From NCBI RefSeq assembly GCF_000143415.4, contig NW_003314261.1, forward strand, positions 4,856,418-4,920,417: a DNA stretch of 64,000 bases. Reading direction: 5' to 3'. This stretch comes from Selaginella moellendorffii (lineage: Eukaryota; Plantae; Lycopodiophyta). Position 1 is the stretch's first letter. Each line of letters begins with the position of its first letter. Shown here piece by piece: positions 33,581-36,503 of the stretch. The notes under the pieces were generated by a model. The model was not told where the DNA came from, made no database searches, and saw nothing but the letters and a program-made list of their open reading frames with translations. The translations under genes were made by a program, and so were the position numbers.

Positions 33581-33982
33581 TTATCCACCATCATCTGTTG
33601 TGCTCGTGCACATAAAAGTGCCTGCAAACAAGCCAAGCAAATAAAAGAAAGAAGGAAAAGGAGAGAGAAAGAAAGAACCAAGGAAGATGGAGAATTTTCT
33701 CGGCATACCTTGGAGCGATAAAACTGTGGGAGTGCTCATTCGCAGCACGGCGCCATTGCCATTCCTAGCTCTCCAAATCATGGAATCTAGCGAAGAAATC
33801 TGCCGCAATTTGGAGCCTTCGGTATTGGCGGCAGCGGCATTTGCCCGGAGAATCACGCAAGGCGATGATTTCGCAGCCAGATTTGACCTGGAGAGCGACG
33901 AGGAGGAGCGCAGCGCCTGGGGAGGAGAGACAAGGCGGCGCGCAAGCGCCATGGATGCCGCATTCCCGGATATTGTAGCCAT
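33581..33982 (-). CDS. Small organelle-targeted protein, possibly a diverged NFD6/NOXY2-like paralog (exons 33982-33709 and 33621-33581)
   Basis: Ser/Arg/Ala-rich presequence-like N-terminus, phase-1 intron after LSLQG, short terminal exon ending TDDGG*; telo-box at ~33997. Confidence 0.45.
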   Translation of the reverse strand: MATISGNAASMALARRLVSPPQALRSSSSLSRSNLAAKSSPCVILRANAAAANTEGSKLRQISSLDSMIWRARNGNGAVLRMSTPTVLSLQGMPRKFSIFLGSFFLSPFPSFFYLLGLFAGTFMCTSTTDDGG

Positions 33983-34098
33983 TCCCTCGCGCCTAAAACC
34001 CTAAAACATTATCCGCCAGCGTGGCAGACACGTCATCGTATTTTAGGGCTGATTTGCCATGTCATGAGCTCACAAGGGTTTAGGGCTTGGGGCTTCTC

Positions 34099-35257
34099 AT
34101 GGCGAGCAGGGGAATAGCGAGGCGCCTGATTGCGACAATGCGCGCGCCGCCGCGGCAATCGGCCTTCCAGCGGCCGCGATGCCTCAGGTATGATCTCCCG
34201 GCGCCGTTGCCTGCTCACGTACTTCGACACACATAGGATTCCTCGTGAAATCGCGGCGCTGGAGTCAATGCGGCCGTTTCACAGCACTCTGGCGTCATCG
34301 CGGCTGGTTTCCGGGCTCTCGAGCTGCGGGTTTCTACGTTTCGAAGGTCAGGCTCTCTCCGCTCGTTCCGCCGCTTGAATGCTTGCCTGCCAGTCGGTTG
34401 TTTGAGAGCCGTTCTTACTCATTCCAGGTGCTCGGAGGTCCTGCTCCACCGAGTCTAGCTCTAGTGACAAGAATGAGAAGTCCTTCTTCGACGAGCGCGA
34501 GCAATTGTCCGACACGAGCGATGGAGAAGGGAGCTATAGTGAGAGTGAGTCGATGTGGAGCCACGACGAAGGAGAGGGTGGTGGTGGTGGCGACTCAGAC
34601 CAGGGGTCGGAGTTTGAGGAGGGTGATACGTATCTCAACGACAACGATCTCTGGGACGAGAACGAGGGGATGGATGAAACACCTAGCAGTGAACTGACCG
34701 AGAAGGATACGGAAGAAAGTAAAGAGGTGGAGCAGCCTTCGGTCTCGGATAGATTGATGGAAGAACTCGCGCGTGTTCTTCCCAATGTTCCGGAGGACGC
34801 AGTGAAGAAGGCCGAGGAGAAGTTTAGGCAGCAGCAGGGGGAAGCTGGGCGGGTTCGTAAGGAAGCCGGCGCTTATCTCAGAGCGATGAAGAAGGAGTAC
34901 GACTCTAGATCGTTAGTCCAGGACGAGCACTGCAAGAAAGTTCATCAGAAGCTGTCCATGCTAGCACCGGATCCGGATGGGAGGTACCGGAGCTTGATGG
35001 AGGTGGTGTCGGACATAGACGTTCTACTGGAGGCGTACAGGAGAGTCAAGGCGGGTCCAGGTGGCGATCCATCGAAAGTTCCTCTGGACAACGTGAGCAT
35101 GGACTGGTTCCACAACACTCAAGCCAAGCTTAGAAACGGGACGTTCAAGCTGAGCCCGATCAAGGTGGTGGAGATTGAGAAGCGGGAGCTAAGCGGGATC
35201 GAGAGGAAGCGGAAGCAGTATCATCGTTTCCACAGGAAGCACCGGCAGCCATACTGA
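34099..35257 (+). CDS. Long isoform: NFD6/NOXY2-like N-terminus plus acidic linker plus group II intron maturase N-terminal (RT0)-like domain (exons 34099-34187, 34237-34346, 34428-35257; 342 aa)
   Basis: Acceptor ttccag at 34427 puts the exon in frame with ORF 34505..35257; YRSLMEVVSDIDVLLEAYRRVKAGPG...LDNVSMDWFHNTQAKLRNGTFKLSPIKVVEIEK follows the maturase RT0 pattern. Confidence 0.7.
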
Positions 35258-35510
35258 CGAGCGTAAGATCTGGCTTGGCTGGATTTCTGGGGCTAACTTG
35301 GAGGTGTGAACAAAAGCAGGACGCATTGTCAGCTATGTTAGCCCACCTTAAGTGTCGCTTCTTGCGTTCTTGACGAAGGCTTGTCAACCAGTAGACTGGT
35401 AGGTGTTGCTTGCTAGAAAAGAAAGAATTTTCCTGTTCGTGTCATCTGACCGGGTGAATCGTTCTCGTTTTTGACCAGATCGATTCGCGAACTATGTCAG
35501 CCCTCACTGA
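34099..35510 (+). CDS. NFD6/NOXY2-like small mitochondrial protein, short isoform (exons 34099-34187, 34237-34346, 35479-35510; 76 aa)
   Basis: Presequence MASRGIARRLIATMR; family motif RIPREIAALESMRPFHSTLASSRLVSGLS; terminal exon DRFANYVSPH* resembling the RFANYLSPI ending as I recall it for this family; GT-AG sites in phase. Confidence 0.65.
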
Positions 35511-36503
35511 AGATGGAGCGTGGCCACACCAGCACGACACACATCCGCTGCGAGGTTTACTACATTGGCTCTTCCCCTCTCTCACTCTTTCCTTTTTAAT
35601 GGATTTCTCTACTTTTCAATCCGACTGCTACTGCTGAGTCTCCGCTCGCTCTCTCGCGATTCGAGCCACCCGGGTATTATTATATGATCGCTCCAGCGGC
35701 CAGCCGCGTGGTCCTAGTTTGATCCGGTGATCTCGACGGTTGAAGCGTTTGAAGCTGGTTCGTACGCGAAGGCTTTGTGTCGGTGTGTGTAAGCGCACTT
35801 ACACAAGAATGTACTCCCCCAGGTAGCTAGCTATGCACACATTTCCAGTGATCATTTGGTTCTGGAGTTCCAGATATGTGGTTTTTGCAGGCTTTTTGAC
35901 GCGATCAGTCCTCGTCCAAACAGGTACGTTGTTGCATTAATGCCATCGCCGAGCTCTGCTATTGACATGCTTTATGGTATTTCAGTGCTGCTCCTGCTGC
36001 TGCTGCTGCTGCCCGAGATGGGATGATCCATCTGGTGGGATTTCGCTACTGCGGCTCTGTGCTCCCCCGCTGCAACGCTCAGATATGGTGAAAGTGACCA
36101 AAAGTTTTATTGCGAGCTACACAGATGGAATGAATGTAACACTACGAAGCAGCATCTCTTCCCCCCGCGGCTTGATATAACAAATTATATCGGAACAAGG
36201 AGAACGGAAAAGGCCTGCGCGAGAGGAAATGTTTAAGCCTCTTGGATCGTCGAGCAAAAAAAATGGTGCCTTGTGACAAGAGCTCCATCTGAAGGTGTTA
36301 GTAGCGGCCCAGAACCAGGTACCTTGTCTCAAAATGCGCTGGGCCGTGGAAGTTATTTGCTAATTCATGTGTACGTTTCTTTTTCTCCTTTCGGTGCTGC
36401 AGTAGAACGCGCAAAACTGGACCTTTCTTCGCTTGGCCAGACTTAAACACCGACCTCCTGGCTCTTTCGAGATGGTCCTGCTATCGAGGTAAGTTTCCAA
36501 TTT

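Follow-up and report, generated by a model that had tools for sequence, protein, structure and literature searches.

The gene LOC9642249 of the lycophyte Selaginella moellendorffii, which lies in a stretch of 64,000 nucleotides (nt) of contig NW_003314261.1 (hereafter the window, with all positions counted from its first letter), is probably an expressed chimeric nuclear gene. Its exons 1 and 2 are those of an NFD6/NOXY2-type gene, whose members encode small organellar proteins, and its long third exon encodes the body of a family of plant proteins (the RT0-only family) in which nothing but RT0 is left of a group II intron maturase. The 342-amino acid (aa) product of these three exons (Table 1) is identical, letter for letter, to RefSeq entry XP_002960508.2 ("uncharacterized protein LOC9642249"). 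The allele, LOC9634708, has the same exon structure, and two older models (302 aa) from the Joint Genome Institute (JGI) likewise join exon 2 to the long exon. The initial annotation, made from the letters of the window, had described two small exons followed by two alternative acceptors. When the respective intervals were spliced from the window, exon 1, exon 2, the splice sites, frames and peptides were all reproduced; the acceptors at 34427 and 35478 are both in frame, the former giving the 342-aa product through an 830-nt exon, and the latter a 76-aa product ending in DRFANYVSPH.

The relationship of exons 1 and 2 to NFD6 was assessed with a family profile. An NFD6-like query served as bait only; all sequences used were database proteins returned by the search, and the profile was built from 102 named NFD6 proteins. 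It matched the 76-aa form with 21.8 bits (E 1e-8 as a single comparison); the best of 5000 composition-matched shuffles reached 11.3 bits. In a six-frame scan of the 64-kb window, exon 2 was the sole significant match to the profile (E 6e-4 among 1593 segments). It reads R-I-P-R-E ... E-S-x-x-P-F-H-S ... A-S-x-x-L-x-S-x-L-S ... F-x-x-E, and hence contains the core motif of the family (R-x-P-x-E ... E-S-x-x-P-x-H-[ST] ... A-S-x-x-L-x-S-x-L-S). The gene structure was compared with that of one NFD6 gene, from the angiosperm Tasmannia lanceolata (L006), which consists of exons of 140, 122 and 20 nt separated by introns of phases 2 and 1, the last of them 1528 nt long. Its phase-2 intron splits an Arg codon just before S-P-V-E, and its phase-1 intron follows W-L-S-E. 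The window exons of 89 and 110 nt have the same intron positions, the same phases (2 and 1) and the same split Arg codon. Because the profile match is joined by this independently matching gene structure, exons 1 and 2 are NFD6 exons, in agreement with the NFD6/NOXY2 assignment of the initial annotation. Despite this common ground, NFD6/NOXY2 proteins are only ∼90–100 aa long and terminate in CNDDV or GQxKTR, whereas the annotated product of the window has 342 aa and neither of these ends. Exon 1 encodes an Arg-rich presequence, with eight R+K and no D+E among the first 30 residues. Nothing relevant was retrieved when exons 1 and 2 were compared with Pfam and NCBIfam; a word-based homologue search with the 76-aa form gave no match, nor did feature searches of the ESM Atlas with residues 1–66 and 225–342.

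The long exon had been described as maturase-like, and homology to the RT0 to early RT1 region of mitochondrial-type group II maturases was indeed found, both by phmmer and with profiles. A phmmer search with residues 170–342 against 1.8 billion representative proteins (cut-off E < 1e-3) yielded 40 matching proteins, 21 of which carry RVT_1, eight Intron_maturas2 and three an AI2M-type HNH domain. One match is fused to a segment of an ATP synthase alpha/beta chain (ATP-synt_ab_C) and another to COX1; both look like mitochondrial intron open reading frames (ORFs). In the full-length proteins the matched part directly precedes RVT_1, as in P0007 (RVT_1, Intron_maturas2 and HNH; phmmer E 7e-9), where the match spans residues 74–149 and RVT_1 begins at 146. 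The pattern common to these sequences, D-G-R-Y ... S-D-x-D-x-L ... A-Y ... K ... P-G ... L-D ... W-F ... L-R-x-G-T-[FY]-K-x-x-P ... V-x-I-x-K, is assigned to RT0 and the first strand of RT1. A profile of the RT0-only family scored 27–69 bits against maturases and 118 bits against the 342-aa product. The initial annotation had confined the maturase-like stretch to 34967–35181; the homology is real, but its extent is somewhat wider, as the envelope of the family profile runs from 34934 to 35215. Since the NFD6 and the maturase-like motifs are both statistically real, their presence in one gene is more than chance.

The likeness to maturases ends abruptly. The 342-aa protein ends ∼25 residues beyond V-x-I-x-K, the opening strand of RT1, so that only the RT0 motif is present, and the finger/palm core (RT1-7), the X/thumb domain and the endonuclease domain are absent. 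Thus, the protein is maturase-derived rather than a maturase. In this it departs from nMAT1-4, which likewise are nuclear genes, descend from group II intron maturases of mitochondria and have N-terminal organelle-targeting signals (PMC9321910; PMC10012718): whereas the nMATs are ∼700 aa long and keep the RT1-7 and X/thumb parts needed for splicing, the RT0-only family keeps RT0 and the first RT1 strand (∼95 aa), to which, unlike the nMATs, it adds an acidic linker and a basic tail.

The best phmmer matches were not maturases but short proteins of uniform build, in which a presequence-like N-terminus is followed by an acidic stretch with Trp residues, then by the RT0 domain and finally by a basic tail. 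They include a protein of Diphasiastrum complanatum (273 aa) and the product of a second S. moellendorffii gene, LOC112343584 (355 aa), as well as members from Adiantum (a tandem set), tomato, Quillaja, Rhodiola, Striga and Lithocarpus. Acidic W-x-x-D/E stretches resembling the linker of the window gene occur in P0006, P0016 and P0026, and all N-termini of the family are presequence-like and Arg/Ser-rich, with three to eight R+K and zero to one D+E in the first 30 aa. In a tree of the domain, the 14 short proteins formed one clade (support 96/84) with fern, lycophyte and angiosperm subclades, from which it follows that the family is at least as old as the common ancestor of vascular plants. 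The lycophyte part was resolved as (Diphasiastrum,(Selaginella paralog, window gene)) with support of 97/84, and the two Selaginella genes are therefore lineage-specific duplicates. Judged by the tree, which follows the species tree, the family is vertically inherited.

In the open-access literature, no name, Pfam model or published description of this RT0-only plant family was found. The ESM Atlas cluster containing the angiosperm form is labeled "hypothetical protein" and has 126 members and no Pfam family. A contig of Adiantum nelumboides (JAKNSL020002714.1; L008, in the cluster of P0027) carries at least nine near-identical RT0-only models of 164–250 aa, which suggests a tandem array; the model examined lacks a presequence and is possibly truncated at its 5′ end. 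Two members were deposited under names that look like annotation errors, namely "Glutamyl-tRNA (Gln) amidotransferase subunit C" for the Quillaja protein (P0023) and "clavata3-like" for that of Striga (P0022). The fern and angiosperm gene structures were set aside as a guide to the ancestral structure, as the Adiantum model lacks the presequence and the intron phases of Striga and Rhodiola differ.

Expression of the chimera was approached through a k-mer index of sequencing runs. For the interval 34158–34457, a fully spliced transcript (contributing exon 2 only) is expected to hold ∼0.30 of the words, a transcript retaining intron 2 0.71, and DNA 1.0. Thirteen RNA-like runs from four studies held 0.35 of them; two runs, X7 and X10, held 0.70 and 0.65, and one small run 1.00. 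Of the words of 34000–35700, runs from the same four studies held 0.63–0.79, and therefore the RNA must cover the greater part of the long exon and some of the sequence downstream of it. These values, which are k-mer shares and not junction reads, fit an mRNA composed of exon 1, exon 2 and the long exon. The in-frame junction of exon 2 with the long exon, as originally proposed, agrees with the RefSeq and JGI models and with word shares that fit the removal of both small introns, and the spliced fusion of the two exons is very likely. The values for X7 and X10 are near that expected for retention of intron 2. In such a transcript the frame stops after 75 aa, and the encoded NFD6-like protein would terminate within the intron. 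A short product could also arise by this second route, carry-over of DNA or pre-mRNA being an equally good reading of the two values.

The initial annotation had attributed the long exon to the capture of a maturase fragment at this very locus, and had suggested that related lycophytes be inspected for the same nested layout. The capture was not supported by the comparison. The tree identifies the long exon as the body of the vertically inherited RT0-only family of vascular plants, and both the Diphasiastrum gene (exons of 56, 101 and 665 nt) and the Selaginella paralog (59, 47 and 962 nt) have 5′ exons that are not of NFD6 type: no NFD6 signal was detected in the two proteins (P0002, P0006) or in six-frame scans of their loci. 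As these relatives have presequence exons of their own, it was probably in the Selaginella lineage that the window gene obtained its NFD6 front end, and the novelty of this locus lies in that front end rather than in a transfer to the nucleus. In the simplest course of events, an RT0-only gene would have been duplicated in the Selaginella lineage, and the long exon of one copy, together with its acceptor, would have come to lie behind NFD6 exons 1 and 2, either by insertion into the last intron of an NFD6 gene or by capture of a partial NFD6 duplicate. Exon 2 would then have been spliced to the long exon across the counterpart of the long phase-1 last intron of NFD6 genes, the reading frame being preserved because both introns involved are of phase 1. 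In this way, the copy would have come under the NFD6 promoter and obtained both the Arg-rich presequence and the core motif of NFD6.

This arrangement bears comparison with rps14, which in grasses is nested in an intron of sdh2 and is expressed and targeted via alternative splicing (Ong and Palmer 2006, PMC1543663). In both cases, a protein of mitochondrial ancestry is encoded downstream of the 5′ exons of a nuclear gene whose product is mitochondrial, and splicing supplies it with the promoter and presequence of that gene; recognizable host-gene exons joined in frame to a nested body are present at the Selaginella locus, according to the gene models and k-mer shares. The likeness does not extend to the history of the nested body. 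rps14 represents a recent organelle-to-nucleus transfer for which both mRNAs are documented, whereas the mRNA for the short form in the window is hypothetical. Moreover, unlike rps14, the body in the window belongs to a nuclear family older than the split between lycophytes and euphyllophytes and has its own presequence elsewhere. A recent transfer lacking its own targeting signal is thus not the case here, the family being vertically inherited and its other members carrying presequences of their own.

As to what the product does, the presequence-like N-termini of the family fit import into mitochondria, and the 342-aa protein would be imported there. It probably acts as a noncatalytic RNA-binding accessory protein for group II introns, to which it would bind through the RT0 surface and the basic tail. 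For bacterial maturases, current views assign to RT0 intron-specific RNA contacts and an interaction with intron domain IV. An accessory role of this kind in the splicing of organellar group II introns appears to be the most likely function.

Several observations weigh against this interpretation or parts of it. Compared with Pfam and NCBIfam, the long exon returned nothing relevant, i.e., no RVT_1 even at E 10, no GIIM and no Intron_maturas2, and a single-sequence search of the PDB with it gave only chance matches to alpha-actinin. The family profile had a single match in the PDB, residues 19–97 of LtrA (the RT0/early-RT1 region), with a marginal E value (0.054). LtrA and other bacterial group II intron-encoded proteins (PDB 5G2X) thus share with the conserved domain a region to which it aligns, but the sequence match is marginal, LtrA has all the downstream domains that are missing in the RT0-only protein, and a fold search did not confirm the likeness: an AlphaFold2 model of the domain, computed from an alignment of 13 rows, attained a predicted local distance difference test (pLDDT) score of only 69, and with this model Foldseek found nothing in the PDB better than E 3.7. 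Evidence from the fold was dropped for these two reasons. At the level of the gene, the 34346>34428 junction rests on predicted models and k-mer shares. The Diphasiastrum gene and the Selaginella paralog also consist of three exons, with a phase-2 intron that splits an Arg codon and then a phase-1 intron. The import and RNA binding envisaged for the product are predictions from its sequence. Finally, that the NFD6 motif is still detectable with an angiosperm profile argues for selection, the target of which could be a separate NFD6 product.

Such a separate product would arise if the locus had remained an intact NFD6 gene with a dual output, in which exon 2 has two alternative splicing partners, the long exon, giving the 342-aa fusion of NFD6 and RT0 parts, and the mini-exon at 35479, giving the 76-aa NFD6-like protein, by analogy with rps14 and sdh2. 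This is a tentative proposal, plausible in its details but on balance doubtful. In NFD6 genes, too, the last intron is long and of phase 1 and the exon after it is tiny, and the acceptor at 35478 has a T-rich tract and a CAG and keeps the frame. Several further in-frame acceptors, however, are found downstream. The angiosperm genes provide a precedent: after the same phase-1 intron, they use alternative mini-exons that end the protein in ...E-[DA]-CNDDV or in ...E-GQ[DE]KTR (L006:1501-3397, P0060-P0179), and many of their annotated isoforms read on into the last phase-1 intron, so that alternative 3′ ends already occur at the last NFD6 intron. The peptide DRFANYVSPH, on the other hand, is unlike the C-terminal ends of 120 NFD6 proteins. 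The fact that the NFD6 core motif has been kept suggests selection for NFD6 function, and the region 35258–35800 is as conserved between the alleles as are the exons; in the part that forms the 3′ untranslated region (UTR) of the long mRNA (35258–35478), the alleles diverge by 1.4%, which is about the value of the exons and less than that of the flanks (2.6–2.8%). Over the 32-nt mini-exon, however, this comparison is without statistical power, since alleles of 98.4% identity present too few differences. RefSeq lists the 342-aa protein only, and neither allele's 76-aa product occurs in a collection of 15 billion proteins that includes RefSeq; this absence weighs little because transcript-derived copies of the long form are likewise missing from that collection.

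A different history, in which an RT0-only gene already lay behind NFD6 exons in the lycophyte ancestor and the NFD6 motif later decayed in Diphasiastrum and in the second Selaginella gene, would account for a pattern of NFD6 type that recurs in the three lycophyte genes, each of which begins with two short 5′ exons, has introns of phases 2 and 1 in this order and splits an Arg codon at the first junction. We consider it unlikely. There is no NFD6 profile signal in P0002, P0006 or their loci, and the first exons of the relatives (56 and 59 nt) are alike in length but unlike that of the window gene (89 nt). It is rated lower than acquisition in the Selaginella lineage because two independent decays would be needed, and because the coincidence of phases is weak (roughly 1 in 3), phase 2 with AG|G being the commonest kind of split codon. 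Least of all, although gene predictors are prone to join in-frame exons, is the long ORF to be expected to be a separate gene or a decaying copy within an NFD6 intron and the 342-aa fusion an annotation artefact, given that the long exon by itself encodes no presequence when every family member has one, that the ORF is intact in both alleles despite nine differing sites over the 830-nt exon, that acceptor and phase fit exactly, and that RNA-like runs hold exon 2 without its introns along with most of the long exon.

The features of the locus are compiled in Table 1. Three boxes resembling the plant telomere repeat lie upstream of the ATG at a distance of less than 100 nt or thereabouts, AAACCCTAA at 33996–34004 and TTTAGGG at ∼34042 and ∼34081. 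An ORF of 133 aa with a Ser/Ala-rich N-terminus, located on the minus strand at 33581–33982, points away from the chimeric gene and may be a divergently transcribed neighbor; a 104-aa gene has been called at this place on scaffold GL377799.1 (L002). The allelic copy of the locus is found on two scaffolds of the same assembly, GL377573.1 (L001) and GL377799.1, with the same upstream neighbors, i.e., genes for a C2-domain protein and a peroxidase, and probably reflects redundant assembly of one haplotype.

Table 1. Features of the LOC9642249 locus, in positions of the window.
Feature	Position	Strand	Description
Putative promoter/5′ leader	33995..34090	.	Three plant telomere-repeat-like boxes, read directly from the letters
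Exon 1	34099..34187	+	89 nt; ATG at 34099; donor GTATGA; phase-2 end inside an Arg codon
Intron 1	34188..34236	+	49 nt, GT..AG
Exon 2	34237..34346	+	110 nt; acceptor ...CATAG, donor GTCAGG; phase-1 end; NFD6 core motif
Intron 2	34347..34427	+	81 nt, GT..AG; acceptor CATTCCAG at 34427
Long exon	34428..35257	+	830 nt including TGA at 35255-35257; product 342 aa
Acidic Trp-containing linker	34430..34738	+	Residues 68-170; 34 D+E in 103 aa
RT0 to early-RT1 homology domain	34934..35215	+	Residues 236-329, family profile envelope
Basic C-terminal tail	35162..35254	+	Residues 312-342; 14 K+R+H in 31 aa
3′-UTR of the long mRNA	35258..35478	+	If the short form exists, remainder of a 1132-nt intron
Hypothetical short terminal exon (DRFANYVSPH*)	35479..35510	+	In frame; acceptor TTTTTGACCAG at 35478; 76-aa product

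A more far-reaching role of the RT0-only family can be envisaged from what is known about organellar maturases. According to a review (PMC9321910), MatR and MatK have no RT0, and that of the nMATs is degenerate. The members of the family might then act in trans as the missing N-terminal module for those organellar maturases whose RT0 is lacking or degenerate, so that group II introns would be recognized by a split maturase in all vascular plants, and in Selaginella this module would be coexpressed with an NFD6 protein from one promoter via alternative last exons. Taken as a whole, this scenario is speculative, and we would give it little credence at present. The mitochondrial DNA of S. moellendorffii contains many group II introns but has no matR, nad1i728 carrying nad4L instead (PMC5654404). 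A strict partnership with MatR is therefore unlikely in Selaginella, and as two RT0-only genes have been kept there in the absence of matR, any partner would be nuclear-encoded.

The locus provides a clear case, open to dating, in which a nuclear gene for an organelle protein has exchanged its import signal, a change made possible by matching intron phase, and the closest relatives still display the earlier state of the gene. The more general novelty is a family, conserved in lycophytes, ferns and also flowering plants, whose proteins have retained no part of a group II intron maturase other than RT0. If it is true that its members bind intron RNA, they would constitute a new class of candidate splicing cofactors.

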